Assembly: GCA_038496445.1 (NCBI GenBank)
Contig: JALMLS010000538.1
Span: 193,651 to 257,650, forward strand
Direction: 5' to 3'
DNA from: Trichosphaerium sp. ATCC 40318
Taxonomy: Eukaryota; Protista; Tubulinea
DNA: 64,000 bases
The notes under the pieces are model-generated. The model did no database searches, was not told the origin of the DNA, and worked only from the letters and a program-made list of their open reading frames with translations. Of the stretch, positions 55,731-64,000 are shown piece by piece (the stretch's first letter is position 1; every line of letters starts with the position of its first letter). The position numbers and the translations under genes are program-made.

Positions 55731-56600
55731 ATGAGAAGAGTCTTTAAGCCAGTTTTTTGTTCAGTTAAGCCTTCAAAACAGTTTACTGCTACAACGATGG
55801 CTAGCGTATTCGACTTTAAAGTAAAGAATATTGATGGCGAAATGGTCGATTTGAGCGACTTCAAGGCACAGAAACGACAATTATTCAAAAAAAACAAGTC
55901 GGCGAAAATATTTTCCTTCTCATTAACTCTTCGACGCCGCCACACGCATCTAACACCTTATATTCTATTTTATAACTGTTTTCTAGAACAAAGTGACATT
56001 GATCGTCAACGTCGCATCCAAGTGAGGCGTAACAACCGGTATGCTTAATTTAACCAACTGTTAGCTGTTTTTACGGAGAAATTCGTTTAGCTAACTAAAA
56101 CCATAGCAAACTACAAGGAGCTTGTAGTGTTGCGCGAAAAGTACCACAAAGAAGGATTTGAAGTGCTTGCATTCCCTTGCAATCAAGTAAGCCGCCATTT
56201 CTTCTTTTCTTGTCGAAAACGTCATTCTCATTCTCATTAACACCTCTTTTTTTTAATAGTTCGGTGGTCAAGAACCAGGCAGTAACGAGCAGATTAAAAA
56301 GTTTGTTGCAGGATTTGGTGTTAAATTCCCAATGTTTGATAAACTCGATGTCAAGGGTAAAAATCAAGATCCCTTGTTTGCATTCTTGTGCTCTAAACAT
56401 GAAGGCGTGTCTGAGAGCACTATTGGTTGGAATTTCTCAAAGGCACGGACAGGGAAAAAGACGTAAACGTTTCCATTTTTGACTGACTTTGATTCTAGTT
56501 TGTTTGCAATAAGAATGGCGTACCTGTACAGTTCTATGATACACGCGTTAGTCCGAGCGAAATAGAGCCAAAGATTGTTGAGCTCTTAAAAGACAAATGA
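55731..56600 (+). CDS. GPX: Selenocysteine glutathione peroxidase, second copy; possible alternative ATGs at 55731 (presequence) and at the MASVF Met
   Basis: VNVASK-TGA(56023-56025)-GVT, LAFPCNQFGGQEPG and GWNFSKF. SECIS downstream. Confidence 0.93.
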
Positions 56601-56654
56601 AGCCAGAATGGCTCTAAATTGCTTAAAAGTCCTTATACCGCATGCTTATGAAAC

Positions 56655-56714
56655 GATTTATGATATGCAATTGTTCAAACCCTAAACTAGTTGGGCACAA
56701 TCGCATTGATAACC
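56655..56714 (+). promoter_or_regulatory. SECIS element (type II) of the plus-strand GPx
   Basis: ATGAT-ATGCAATTGT-TC-AAA-CCC..GGG-C-ACAATCGCAT-TGAT. Confidence 0.85.
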
Positions 56715-57325
56715 TTTTATCTGTTTTGTAATCATTCACCGGCTTGAAGGAAGCCATAAGCAAGTCATATTAAACGTGAAACTGCGTTAGTACTGCTACG
56801 TAGTTGTATAATAAACAATGCGCAGTATTTCACGTAAAAATTAAATTCTATGCCTATTTTACCCTTTGTAGCGCTAAGAGACTGCGAAAGCTATTTCCTG
56901 GTTGCAGTTTCGTATCAACATTTCGAAACGTCGTCTACTCACGTACTTTTATCACGTTTCTATGGCTTGATTAGGTTGTATGTGTATATAAAGCGGTTTC
57001 TTGTTTCTCTAGAGGTGTTGTAGTTATTTTAAAAGAGTCCTCTGCCAAGTAGTTTGACTTTTTTTTATTTTTCGAAGCCCAGATTTTATTTACGTCACGC
57101 AACTAACGATAGCTGCTACTACGAACATACGAAAAGCTCACATAGTCAAGAGGTATGGGATAGTTGAAGGTCAAAAGCCATTCAAACCTGTTTTGCATTT
57201 CTCCTCGTTCTACTCGAACGTGCTTATGGCGTCATACTTGAGTCATAGCTGTGCTTGATGCAGCAGTGGTATTGGCTTGCGTTTTAATTTTAACCAAGAT
57301 GTAGAAATTGTTCGAGAGTTGAAGT

Positions 57326-60048
57326 ATGATCAAGCTCCCTACGTTAATCTTCATATTACACATCACAGTGCTCATCCCGGTTGCTATTGGATCGCTATCG
57401 TGGATTGAAAACGGGGCACCAGGTAATCCCTCTTTTTTTATGACATTTCCTATTCGTTTGTTATCAATAACCCCAAAGAACGCTTAAAATAATAAAAGAA
57501 CAGCATTTGAAATCTCGTGCTATGCAGTTTTAACGACTTTTCTCAGTTCATGCAAACGCTCCGTTTCTTGACTTTACAGGGGCGTCAGGTATACCAAATG
57601 GTACTTTAGAGGGTATTCTATGTAGCGCAAAACACGAGGTACGAAACAGTTTTAAATTTATTTTTAAATTTCGTCTGTACAGCGACTCTTAATGGTTAAT
57701 CCTTTGGTAGCGTTATGTATGTGCTAACGTGACGACAAAGATACTATTTGTTGAGTTTGAACAGGGAACAGTTGATAGAGTGCTTCGTCCTATAGTTGAC
57801 GAGCACGACAACTATGTAGCGATCATTTTAGGTTCAACCGACAGTACGCTTTTTTAGCTAAAACAATTTTTTTTGTTTTTTTATTTTTCGCTGTTTTTGC
57901 GACGTTTCGGGTCGTTGAACGGTTTGTTCGACTTTTTTGTGCACACAATTGTGCTTTCGTTTTTATTTACACTACTCCGCGGAGCAACACGTATTAGCAC
58001 GTGATCAAAAAATAAGTGGAACGAACTTTTTCTCTTTTTTTTTTTTGTTCTATTTTGTGGTTTTGCTTTACTGTTTTTAGCGAGTGTCGAAGTGATAATT
58101 TATTTTTTTAAATATTTTTATATAGTTGTAGAAGGTCGTGGGAGGTATCTATACGATACAGAACCAAGCAAGTTCACACCAGCGCCAATTTATGAAATAA
58201 ATCTTAAAGCGACAAATCAGTTGAAATCTCTCTTGGGTTCAGATTCTACGGTCAATATAACACTTACTACTGGAGGTAAACTACCACGCTTTTCCCTCTT
58301 TAAATAATGGGTTAATTCACACAATAAAAAACTGTTTAGATATCAACCAATGGAGCCAATTGGAAAGATCACCTTGGAGCTATTTACTTCAGATAGTTGC
58401 TATAATGCTACCTTCTCTTATCACATTATTGTTTGTATGCTTGGTTGCGTATTATCATTATTACTACCACGAGAACCATGTAATACTACCAAGAGTAGTC
58501 ATGGGACTACATATCTTCGCACTTTTATGCACGTGATTTTTTTTTAACTTGTTTCAAAAAAAGGCCACAAAAAAAAAACTAGTTTGAATTGGCTACTATT
58601 TTGTTGTTTCACAAAACGTTCCACTAACATTTTTCTCCGTTTTAGCTATTGTCATAATGTCGTCGGACTATTTATTTAGAAATTTCCTACCTGCTACTAT
58701 GGTTGTAGCGATGTTTGACATGTGTGTAGCACCAACAATAATAGGTAAAAACCGACTTTTTTTTTTCGTTCGAAAAGAATTGTATTTACGAGATTAATCT
58801 TATTTTATTCTTCTAGCTACTCTTCTAGTAACACTTGCATGGCAAGACGCATTAACTGATAGAGAATTAACAGTTAAAGCTTTTCTTTCAAGCAAGATGC
58901 GTATCGCTTTTTATTGCTTAGTGGCTTTCATGGCTACTGTTGCTGTAATGAGTGTTATGGCTAGGATATTCGTACAAGAGGTTATTATTGATTATGCTTA
59001 TGGCATGATATCAATACTTGTAGTCATAAGTACGCCTCTCTTTGATCTTTTTTTGGGTGCCGGTTTTTTTGTGTTCATTTGTGTTCCACTTTTTTTTTTC
59101 ACTTTTTCCGGAACATCATTTTTTGGCTTCATAGTTGACAAGTTGTATTTATTTTGTTTTCATCGTAGTGATGCTTGTTTTTAAATTCAAAACTGCGTAT
59201 GGTATTGGAAGTCAACTTGGAGGGTTTGATAAAACAAAAAATAGGAGTTCAAGAGAGTATATGCGTCGTGTACGTATTTCTTTTTAAAATTTCTTTTTTT
59301 TTTTTGTTTTACTTATTTAATTACTAGCTCATGTGGCGTATGATACTGGTTGGTACTGCATACTTTCTTTACATCATTGGTATGATTGTAATAATTTCCG
59401 GAGGAGTCTCAACACCTGCAGGTACGCCTTTTCGAACAAGGGCAACTGCGTTGCAATGGAAAAAAAAAAGTATTTACTTACATATCTTTTTCAGGGTTCT
59501 TTGCTACAGGCACTTTGATGTACACATCTGCGTCTCTTGTTGCTGTTGCACAGGTTCATACATTCTTCGTTAAGAGTAGAGAAATCAAGAGCTCAGCAAG
59601 CAGCTCAGGATCAAAGAAAACATCTTCTTTTTCGAAAAGAACAACAAGCGAGATAAGAAATGTAACAACAAGACATACTATCAAAGATCGTGTTATTACA
59701 ATGACAGAGGCACTTCCAGCTCCTGATCAAGGAGAAGTAATAACAAAGAGGAGTATCGCATTAAAAGCAGAACCAGAACATCACGGAGACCATGAGGAGC
59801 TATCTACGTCTTCAGGTCGCACTGAAGGTAGTATAAGTTCGGCGAAAGTATCAAATGCTGGTAACGGAAGTGGTGTCGTTTCGGATGCCTCTAGCTCTCC
59901 AGCACGTGCTTCTTTACACACATCAAGATCTAGTAGTAGAAAATCAAATAAGAAAAACGTAGAGTATGAGCTTAGTAGCCAGAACAGTGAAATTGATGAT
60001 GATGGAGATAATGACGACTCTGAGCATCTAGACGAGCAGACCTTGTAA
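57326..60048 (+). CDS. Signal peptide + PA-like ectodomain + multi-pass (about 7 TM) receptor-like protein with a Ser-rich cytosolic tail
   Basis: Signal MIKLPTLIFILHITVLIPVAIG. PA-like KILFVE..YVAIILG..PIYEI..VNITLTTG|DINQW. Successive hydrophobic exons. Tail encoded by ORF 59515-60048. Confidence 0.65.
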
Positions 60049-60199
60049 ATTTTTTTGTAGTTATAAATAAAATAAGAAAGTAATTTAAACTTGTTATGGA
60101 ACTGTCACATAACCCGGAGAAATAGGATGCCACCTTTGCCGAAGACAAGGACGATTTTTTTGGTGGTTAAGTTATTGTTGTTTGTTCTTAAGTCAGTTG

Positions 60200-60208
60200 T
60201 TTGGCGCG
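60200..60208 (+). promoter_or_regulatory. E2F-like site just upstream of the AMT1-like ATG
   Basis: TTTGGCGCG, identical to the motif in the histone promoter. Confidence 0.45.
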
Positions 60209-60217
60209 GTTTGACAC

Positions 60218-61805
60218 ATGGCAGAGTCAGAGTTAAAACTGTACCTACACGATGATGAGTACCAGGTTAGAGCATTTGAGCGTTCCAAACATAATTCTTG
60301 CATAGTTGCCAACGAATATAACACCTGAGGAGCTGACTCCTATAATTAACGATATACGAAAGGAAATAAAGACTCTAGAACGAGAATTAGGAAAAACTGC
60401 TCAATTAGAAGAAGGTGCGTTATAAACGCTCCCATTACACTCAAAAATGCGAAGATTACGAAGTTGAGACGTTTACAATCCCGCCACATTCCATACCGAT
60501 CAGATGTGATGTCAGACGATTTGACTGGGCTGTACGATAATGCGCTGTGCGAGGTTTTACTAATGTTTACGCAAGGCTCTGGCCGCAGAAGTACAATTTG
60601 ATGTAATAACTATGGATCCACCTTGGCAACTCGCAGGAAGCACACCCACGCGTGGAGTACGTATAAACGCTAAAGCTTTGAAAGATAACGGTTTTTTACG
60701 CATTTTTCTAATTTTTTTTCTAACAAATGTCATAGGTGGCAATCGGTTACTCAGCGCTTCCCAACCATGATATTGAGAATATTCCCATTCCAAAGCTACA
60801 GAAGAATGGATTTTTATTTATATGGGTTATCAATGCACGTTACACGTTTGCTACGAACCTAATGAAGAATTGGGGATACGAGTAAGAACAAAAGTGACAG
60901 TTTCAAGTGTTTGTTTTCGGATTTTTAAAAAAACTTTTGATAGTACGCTGATTAATGTTGTAGGATAGTAGATGACATTACTTGGGTAAAATCTACAGTA
61001 AATAGACGTATGGCGAAAGGTCACGGATTTTATTTGCAGCATGCAAAAGAAACTTGTCTCGTTGGTAAAAAGGTATGTAATCTCTACAATTCCCTTGCTT
61101 TTATGAGATTCTCTGGTTGAGTGAGTTTTCGTCTACTTGAATTTTTTCTTCAATGTATTTGTAGTGTTTTTCGTAGTAGTTGTGTATGAGGGCATTCATG
61201 TTCTGTTTCCACTCTGTTTTCTAAATCAATTTTGTGAGTTTTTTGAAGTCTACAAAAACCCTTAGCTCACAAGCGCTTCAGCGTCTCTTATGGCGTTTAA
61301 GGCAATGACCGACTCTGGTTCGGTTTCACTCAATGCTTGCAGCGCGTAGTGCAACTTGATAACTTGATGTAAATGCTCAACAAAACATTATCATTCAGTT
61401 ACACGCACGTATTTGCTTGTTTTTCTCTCCTAGAGCTATTATACTCGCTTGACTACGCGTTGCATTCATCTCTTTCTGCGTAAAAATTCGCTAAATTTTA
61501 AGCCGAATTTCGCAGTGAAAAGCAAAGCCAGTTGCCACCCAAAACCAGAGCAAATATTTTCCTTAATGGTATCATCGTTTTTCTTATTTTTAACGCACAA
61601 ATTATTACAGGGAAATGATCCACCTAACACACGACGTGGTGTTATGTCAGATGTAATATTTAGCGAAAGAAGAGGCCAAAGTCAGAAACCAGAAGAAATT
61701 TATGAGATGATCGAAAATCTCGTTCCTAACGGGAAATACTTGGAGATATTTTCCAGAAGAAATAACTTAAGAAACTACTGGTTTTCAATAGGGTTAGAAC
61801 TGTAA
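60218..61805 (+). CDS. AMT1: MT-A70 family DNA N6-adenine methyltransferase, AMT1/MTA1 clade
   Basis: IPIRCDVRRFDW, FDVITMDPPWQLAGSTPTRGVAIGY, GFLFIWVIN, WVKSTVNRRMAKGHGFYLQHAKETCLVGKKG and SERRGQSQKPEEIY..LVPNGKYLEIFSRRNNL, all characteristic of AMT1/MTA1. Confidence 0.9.
61101..61469 (-). CDS. Nested antisense 3-exon gene (90 aa helical protein) inside the AMT1 intron
   Basis: Exons 61469-61409, 61362-61271 and 61220-61101. Introns GTGCGT..AAG (46 nt) and GTGAGC..CTCAC..TTTAG (50 nt). The spliced frame is open from ATG to TAA. Confidence 0.75.
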
Positions 61806-62097
61806 TAATGTAAAATAATAAAAATAAAAACAAAAACAAAAACAAGGAAAACGAGTAGCGCGAAAGTATGATCTATCTACGCGTGTTCTGCCCTTGAAAG
61901 TAAGATTGTTTACGCCTTTAATAGCTATCAAAGGTAAACAATCTCAATACTTGGCGTGTGTGCACTGATTTGCAGTAAGAATCAGTTATCGTTGGAAGCA
62001 AAGCATAAGCGATTGTAGTGATGCTCATAAAACAATCACATCTTGCTGTTTAAGTTGTTAACTTCCCGCTTGAGATTTTTTGATTCAGATTGGCCTC

Positions 62098-64000
62098 ATG
62101 GCAACGTATCACGTAGTTCTGTTTGTATTAGTCATACTACACTCCTACGTACAAGCTGGGGTGCTAATCGACGACTTTAGTCTCAATAGAGATGTCTCAA
62201 TTAGCCGTCTATTAAACTTCTCGCAAGTTGTCGATACGCCATCGGACCACTCGTCTTTTATTGGTAATCAACGAACTATCTCCATGTCAAAGAAAGAAGG
62301 CTCATTAGGCGGTTCAATATCAATTGTTTTGGGCTATTTAGCTTTTTCTAACGATGTCCGCACCCAAGCAATTGTAGACATCGACTACAGAGATATTTCA
62401 GGTGATATAACACCATCGTTAGACTTTACAGAAAATGGAGCCGGTGCGTGGTTGCTCTTAGCGAAAAACTAAAAAATTACAGATTGACGCAAGATTTTAT
62501 TTTCGCGGTCACGTGATTTTTTTTTTCACAGTTTTTTTTTATTTTCAACACACGTGTTTTGACTTGAACTTTAATTTTATTTATTTTTCCCTTTTGTAGA
62601 TTGTTTCTTGGTTGATGTTCTTGCTTCTGATCAACTACACACTATTTCATTTATTGCAGATACACCAGAAGGACCACAAACATCAGAATTCTCATTTAGT
62701 TTCGGAGTGGAACCACCAGGAACAAGATTGTGCTTACCTTACGGAGGTAATTAGTGCCTTCTATTTTTTGATTAGTGGCTTATCCAAAACGATGTTGTAG
62801 GTGATTTACAAGCGTATGATGAAGTGACTTCTTTACATTTTAGTGATGAAGCAGACAGCAATGGTGTAGATGCTCTTTATGGATTTTTCTGTGTTGCTCC
62901 TTCAGTCAGTTGTTGGCATGAAATTTCTCCAAACGGATCTGAACCTATACTTGCCGGTGCGTGATAAGAACAAGTAAGGATTGTACAACACTTACAAAAG
63001 AGTTATAGGAGATACACTATCCGTGACTGTACACTGCGAGAACTTTGTTTCGCTTCCTCCAATGAACCAACCCCTAGATATCTCCGTTGAGTTTCCACCT
63101 GAAATTGGTACTATGGATCCTTCTACGTTCACGTGCTCCACGCCCGTAAGATTATAGTGCTACCATATACACTATTTAACGCAATTATTTGTAGGACGTA
63201 CCTACAATCACAGCAACGCCACAACGGTTTCTCGTGTCGACAGACTTGCTAGACAACACAACAATAACTTGCTCTTTCGATATTGATCTCATTGCCGCAG
63301 GCACTGTTGAGGGGTTTGCCGCTCGAGTCCTTAACACAAGATCGGGTTCTGTATCATTCTCAAACACTGGAGGTAACAGGTAATGAATTATAACTCTTAA
63401 ATTTGGAAAAAAAATTGACCAACTAATTAGAGCTGACTCAGTGGCCTTCTGCACTTTGGGTAACTTAACAAGTACCATTGTAGTACAACCTCCTCCACCA
63501 ACACCTCCAACAACTCAAGCTCCAACAGTACCAGCACCACCGACAACACAAGCTCCAACTACAACAGCTCCAACCACTGCGGCACCTACCACTGCAATGC
63601 CCACTGCTCCTCCTACCGAACCACCAACCACAACCCCACCAACTACAGAGGCGCCTGTAGTGCCTACTGCACCTGTTACGCCTACTACAAACCCGCCAAC
63701 CACAGAACCACCTACTACCGAGGCTCCTACTGAACCTCCAACGACACAACCTCCACCAACACTACCACCTACGACAAATCCTCCAACTACTCTTCCACCT
63801 ACGACATTACCACCAACAACACTGTCGCCTACAACAAATCCTCCTACTACTCTCCCTCCTACGACTTTGCCTCCTACGACGCTTCCACCAACAACACTGT
63901 CACCTACAACTCTACCTCCGACAACTCAAATACCAACGACCTTACCTCCAACTACAAGTCCACCAACAACTGAACCTCCAACGACTCAACCTCCAACTAC
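62098..64000 (+). CDS. Secreted mucin-like surface protein ('IDDF' N-terminal domain, Ig-like domain, long Pro/Thr stalk); runs off the window end; paralog of the gene at 34486
   Basis: Signal MATYHVVLFVLVILHSYVQA, then LIDDF...SFIGNQRTI...GYLAFS; similar exon layout to the gene at 34486. Confidence 0.7.
63480..64000 (+). repeat. Coding Pro/Thr repeat (PPTTx)n
   Basis: Many 15-bp units encoding PTTxP. Confidence 0.9.

Follow-up and report, generated by a model that had tools for sequence, protein, structure and literature searches.

A candidate antisense gene nested in the single long intron of an AMT1-type methyltransferase gene in a protist

Orphan and de novo small genes arise in non-coding DNA and are lineage-specific. 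Genes nested within the introns of other genes represent an ordinary and well-known kind of gene arrangement. An example is Drosophila 2mit, an opposite-strand protein-coding gene nested in an intron of timeless2, and intronic genes constitute ~6% of all D. melanogaster genes (PMC3786989). Transcriptional interference is possible for any nested unit that opposes its host, and such effects have been discussed (PMC3192792). In Tetrahymena, the AMT1 complex contains two small helical subunits, AMTP1 and AMTP2 (p1 and p2), which bind the N-terminal helix of AMT1; AMTP2 has been traced over residues 11-132 and forms a four-helix bundle (bioRxiv 10.1101/2025.04.24.650485).

The locus described here lies in a window of 64,000 nucleotides (the whole stretch of protist DNA that was analysed) and consists of an AMT1-type gene whose sixth intron carries, on the opposite strand, a candidate gene of three exons (Table 1). 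As in the case of 2mit and timeless2, a small independent unit with its own splice sites, here predicted, is contained wholly in one intron of a larger gene and runs in the opposite orientation. However, the host intron here spans just 538 nt in a compact genome, and the nested ORF, which is known here from sequence alone, is relative-free and truncated in a second copy of the locus. The candidate also resembles orphan and de novo genes as generally understood (rather than any named family) in its short ORF, atypical codons, lack of homologues, weak or absent purifying selection and absence of the sequence from relatives. In contrast to such genes, it has two introns, which would be unusual for a very young gene, and to demonstrate that it arose de novo would require the orthologous intron of closely related species. 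Like AMTP1 and AMTP2, the candidate product is small and mostly helical by prediction, and its host gene is of the AMT1 type, but exon-by-exon comparison detected no similarity to these subunits, and its length of 90 aa compares with residues 11-132 of AMTP2. The interpretation favoured here, which has about an even chance of being right, is that the intron houses a nested gene on the antisense strand, young and confined to this lineage, which encodes a small helical protein.

Table 1. Coordinates in the window of the host gene, its long intron and the parts of the candidate antisense gene.
Feature	Position	Strand	Details
Host gene	60218..61805	+	Seven exons, 254 codons/aa; MT-A70 DNA N6-adenine methyltransferase, AMT1/MTA1 type
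Host intron 6	61073..61610	+	538 nt, GTATGT..ACAG; the gene's only long intron
Candidate exon 1 (coding part)	61409..61469	-	ATG at 61469; in-frame stop 8 codons upstream
Candidate intron 1	61363..61408	-	46 nt, GTGCGT..CAAG; donor 7.3 bits, acceptor 3.0 bits
Candidate exon 2	61271..61362	-	One synonymous difference in the second copy, at 61274
Candidate intron 2	61221..61270	-	50 nt, GTGAGC..TTAG; donor 3.8 bits, acceptor 6.7 bits
Candidate exon 3 (coding part)	61101..61220	-	TAA at 61103-61101; 39 aa
AATAAA hexamer	61029..61034	-	66 nt 3' of the candidate stop, within host exon 6
Truncating site	61121..61123	-	C79 copy: 1-nt deletion at 61121 and substitution at 61123, giving TGA

The host gene had been labelled AMT1 in a preliminary description of this DNA, and the label is sound given that its last exon matches the Tetrahymena MTA1/AMT1 chains 7f4l, 7yi8 and 8xyl at E~1e-21, as against 1e-9 for METTL3, 3e-3 for MTA9 and 3e-2 for METTL14. 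By these values, which come from the comparison of a single exon, the encoded protein is nearest to AMT1/MTA1 among the four. In a Pfam search, the MT-A70 profile (PF05063) matches host exons 5, 6 and 7 with contiguous profile positions; the matches to exons 5 and 7 exceed the gathering score, and that to exon 6 has E=0.003. The catalytic motif DPPW is encoded at 60615-60626 in exon 4. Host exon 2 (60306-60414, + strand) encodes a helical-looking stretch, PEELTPIINDIRKEIKTLERELGKTAQLEE, which could be the counterpart of the N-terminal AMT1 helix to which the Tetrahymena subunits AMTP1 and AMTP2 bind.

The six introns of the host gene measure 40, 40, 44, 79, 82 and 538 nt, such that the sixth is 7-13 times as long as any of the other five. 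It splits the MT-A70 profile between positions 107 and 119, and its own splice signals score 8.4 bits (donor) and 6.7 bits (acceptor) in the splice model of the genome. With a modal intron length of ~50 nt in the same model, and 40-82 nt for the remaining host introns, the earlier remark that this intron is about ten times the typical size therefore holds. Within the 70-Mb assembly, the 538-nt sequence is found at two places only, namely here and in a copy of 99% identity. Two other kinds of occupant were considered for the intron and rejected. A known RNA (snoRNA, other Rfam family or tRNA) found no credible match, since Rfam searches at permissive E-values gave best values of E 1-7, far under the gathering scores, and a tRNA scan of the 538 nt returned none. 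A transposon or repeat origin was likewise discarded, given the two assembly occurrences and the presence of short imperfect repeats only, with no terminal inverted repeats. On its upstream side, the reading frame of the last host exon continues through 54 intron codons before a stop is met, which makes an ORF of 118 aa (61449-61805, + strand); this extension is probably due to chance, as the MT-A70 profile has no need for it.

Joining of the minus-strand exons across two GT-AG introns gives exactly the 90 aa of the preliminary description, whose start codon, intron lengths and stop codon are reproduced without change. The same description had called the gene invisible to the ORF track, and in the plain ORF list it is indeed present merely as separate fragments of 24, 30 and 32 aa. 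The candidate coding sequence (61101-61469) lies wholly within the host intron; the sole AATAAA hexamer is located in host exon 6. That hexamer is a possible, though weak, poly(A) signal of the candidate gene, given that at least one AATAAA occurs by chance in ~11% of 100-nt stretches of this genome. Candidate intron 2 contains a possible CTCAC branch site. An 18-nt inverted repeat with 83% complementarity, which may be a chance feature, pairs 61333-61350 in candidate exon 2 with 61452-61469 in the region of the candidate start codon. Protein searches, Pfam searches and folding were run exon by exon; structure prediction for exon 3 alone returns a single helix (pLDDT 94.6). A Pfam search with the three antisense exons gave a sub-threshold match to RskA_N (E=0.014 over 11 residues), which was dismissed. 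The predicted product would be a Lys/Glu-rich helical protein of 83-90 aa without detectable relatives, a description that shares the evenly balanced standing of the nested-gene reading as a whole.

If the nested gene is real, a short ancestral intron would have expanded in this lineage to its present 538 nt, and the opposite strand of the added DNA would encode a small, independent gene made up of three exons, with two introns whose lengths are typical. Its own promoter would be accommodated within the 141 nt between the candidate ATG and the host 3' splice site, and its transcript would end inside or just past host exon 6. The gene would be transcribed, spliced and translated, as well as young and weakly constrained. 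The nesting itself would be an accident of location, with no functional tie to AMT1 implied.

A serious, though less likely, alternative is that the ORF arose by chance in an intron lengthened through non-coding expansion or insertion, where stop-poor antisense pieces are joined by fortuitous GT..AG pairs and no protein is made. The base composition of the intron bears on this explanation: because introns are T-rich on the sense strand, this one included, the antisense strand is poor in T and in stop codons, and long antisense ORFs are favoured. The chance expectation was determined as the longest ATG-to-stop ORF with at most two introns on dinucleotide-preserving shuffles of the intron. Under the bare GT..AG rule, with introns of 40-70 nt, an ORF of at least 270 nt is present in 13% of shuffles on the same strand and in 41% on either strand, and a spliced ORF alone therefore means little. 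When the introns are required to be as good as those observed, however, the same-strand rate falls to just 0.5%, although even with this stricter demand such ORFs remain in 3.7-5% of either-strand shuffles and in 5.7% of windows of the reversed genome, or 4-6% overall. A fortuitous origin also fits less well with the length of both candidate introns, which lies at the mode of the genome distribution, and it leaves the long host intron with no other explanation, given that no RNA family, tRNA or terminal inverted repeats were detected in it.

The quality of the splice signals was judged with a model fitted by expectation-maximization (EM) to 254 kb of the contig, in which 153 pairs of neighbouring open frames with coding-like composition were used; the model is noisy and gives approximate scores. 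It was adopted in place of unique-solution intron mining, which had yielded 12 dubious introns only. In this model, the donor consensus of the genome is GTA[C/A]GT. Position +5 of the donor is a G in both candidate introns and in all six host donors, and in about half of donors genome-wide. The summed donor and acceptor scores of candidate introns 1 and 2 are 10.3 and 10.5 bits, corresponding to the 94.5th and 95th percentiles, respectively, of random GT..AG pairs. Measured against 65 confident introns, the candidate introns stand at approximately the 22nd percentile (the 22nd for intron 1). Taken together, the chance tests are suggestive: they favour a real gene without deciding the matter.

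Codon usage falls between the coding and non-coding distributions. With log-odds trained on long ORFs, the candidate ORF scores 0.012 per codon. Real 90-codon windows score 0.10 at the median and 0.001 at the 5th percentile, and open segments in mostly non-coding DNA score -0.026 at the 75th percentile and 0.074 at the 95th. The codon usage of the ORF is thus poor: among real windows it ranks at about the 5th percentile, and among non-coding open segments it falls between the 75th and the 95th, as would be expected of a fortuitous ORF; T occupies 0.14 of its third positions (T3), against 0.36 in real genes. A test of reading frame speaks against such an origin, as the proposed frame scores best of the three, a behaviour displayed by 50 of 52 real coding windows.

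The second copy of the intron is located at G000:C79:6723-7259. A constant offset between matching positions suggests that the contig carrying the window (C82) overlaps, at its end, with the beginning of contig C79; these contig ends look like two haplotypes left uncollapsed, and the two copies of the intron are accordingly read as alleles, a reading from the assembly alone and without proof. Across the wider region, positions 56300-64000 of the window, at the end of C82, are ~99% identical to G000:C79:1-9650 (locus L022) over at least 7.7 kb, and the global alignment of the two contigs breaks down upstream of ~56300. The intron copies differ at seven sites: two in candidate intron 2 (61239 and 61254), two upstream of the ATG, one in exon 2 and two in exon 3, with zero differences in exon 1. 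The exon 2 difference is synonymous (GCG>GCA). Those in exon 3 include a frameshift and together create a TGA, by which the ORF of the second copy ends after 83 aa (...VDEN) with a stop at codon 84; the same TGA was flagged independently in the search of the genome for paralogues. Up to codon 83 neither copy has a stop, the change in exon 2 being the sole one in this part, and an 83-aa product might still be working.

Across the two copies, there are 3 differences in the 273 nt of the ORF and 4 in the 265 nt of the rest of the intron, compared with 2 changes, both synonymous, in 765 nt of host coding sequence. The ORF therefore varies like non-coding DNA, with no sign of purifying selection in these small counts, and this variation, together with the frameshift and stop, counts in favour of a chance ORF. 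A calibration of the indels between the two copies using masks of 'long ORFs' was dropped, as 75% of the sequence falls within open frames of 60 codons or more, and such masks do not separate coding from non-coding DNA.

Searches for relatives of the candidate product gave negative results throughout, as would also be expected of an ORF formed by chance. Within the 70-Mb genome, no paralogue of candidate exon 2 or exon 3 is present. An exhaustive phmmer search with the 39 aa of exon 3 against 1.84 billion representative proteins produced zero matches at E<=1e-3; distant relatives could escape so short a query, whereas an identical sequence among these proteins would score far above the threshold. 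A phmmer comparison of exons 2 and 3 with all PDB chains, AMT-complex entries included, gave no match at E<=10, though sensitivity is low for such short queries. A metagenome scan with the last host exon recovered 80 AMT1-like loci, in which host exons reach 83-91% identity by local tblastn and the antisense exons find nothing better than E=0.07.

Both flanking exons are present in 76 of these loci, none of which has a long intron at the position of host intron 6. The junction is contiguous or interrupted by at most 30 nt in 69 of the 76, and the remaining seven have a gap of 36-111 nt. Among the larger gaps, those in L083, L088 and L089 look like GC-rich insertions that keep the reading frame, and not like introns. 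One environmental AMT1 relative, L031 (GC 41%), possesses a GT..AG intron of 96 nt (L031:690-785) at exactly the same codon position, while most other relatives have no intron there. Some 440 nt were added in this lineage, given the 96-nt length of the intron in L031; the position of the intron predates the lineage, and its length and contents do not. L031 also has the exon 5/6 intron position in common with the host.

The nesting is, on these comparisons, not a conserved feature of AMT1 genes. Coding conservation of the peptide was not found either, with the 76 loci lacking both long intron and peptide, exon 3 relative-free and the second copy bearing a premature stop. The suggestion that the intron encodes a real small protein consequently stands in part: the gene model is exact, its splice signals are better than chance and a protein-coding gene is the leading reading, but the proposal finds no backing in conservation and must accommodate a truncated second copy.

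Rather improbable, by comparison, is a real spliced antisense transcript that acts as an RNA or is mere noise, and whose ORF is incidental or weakly translated. Such a transcript would reconcile the good splice signals with the premature stop in the second copy and the non-coding-like diversity, and the intron folds slightly better than its shuffles, by a marginal degree (z -2.2 for the plus strand and -1.7 for the minus strand). However, when the two introns are taken as given, only 0.3% of shuffles yield an ORF of 270 nt across the three exons of the spliced RNA of 385 nt, and no Rfam family matches the sequence.

It is very unlikely that the nested product is tied to AMT1, whether as a transcriptional-interference regulator or as a small helical member of the AMT1 complex that has been retained at the locus: a lineage-specific accessory factor of 83-90 aa embedded for reciprocal or joint expression is thinkable because the Tetrahymena complex holds AMTP1 and AMTP2 (bioRxiv 10.1101/2025.04.24.650485), and the candidate unit does lie in opposite orientation within the host transcription unit, but the absence of PDB matches, the truncation of the second copy and the AMT1 relatives without long intron and peptide, which show that such nesting is not conserved in AMT1 biology, leave the regulator or partner proposed in the preliminary description unsupported. 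Opposite orientation by itself does not show transcriptional interference, which is not indicated here.

As a nested gene, if real, the candidate would add one more unannotated orphan micro-protein gene to the catalogue of this protist, and would illustrate how an ancestral intron that was short (96 nt in the relative) grew approximately five-fold together with a nested gene. Annotation pipelines would also profit from it, since short genes of several exons within introns escape them. It would bear on the mechanism of 6mA methylation only if a link to AMT1 were shown, of which there is no sign here.

Two further genes were noted in the course of the analysis. A second MT-A70 gene is present in the genome at G000:C183:91415-91585 (L029), with 39% identity to the AMT1-type last exon. 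Downstream of the host, a gene at 62099-64000 of the window (+ strand) has a signal-peptide-like N-terminus, MATYHVVLFVLVILHSYVQAG, an intron of ~150 nt near 62453-62600 and a long Pro/Thr-rich, mucin-like repeat that extends from ~63480 to the end of the window.
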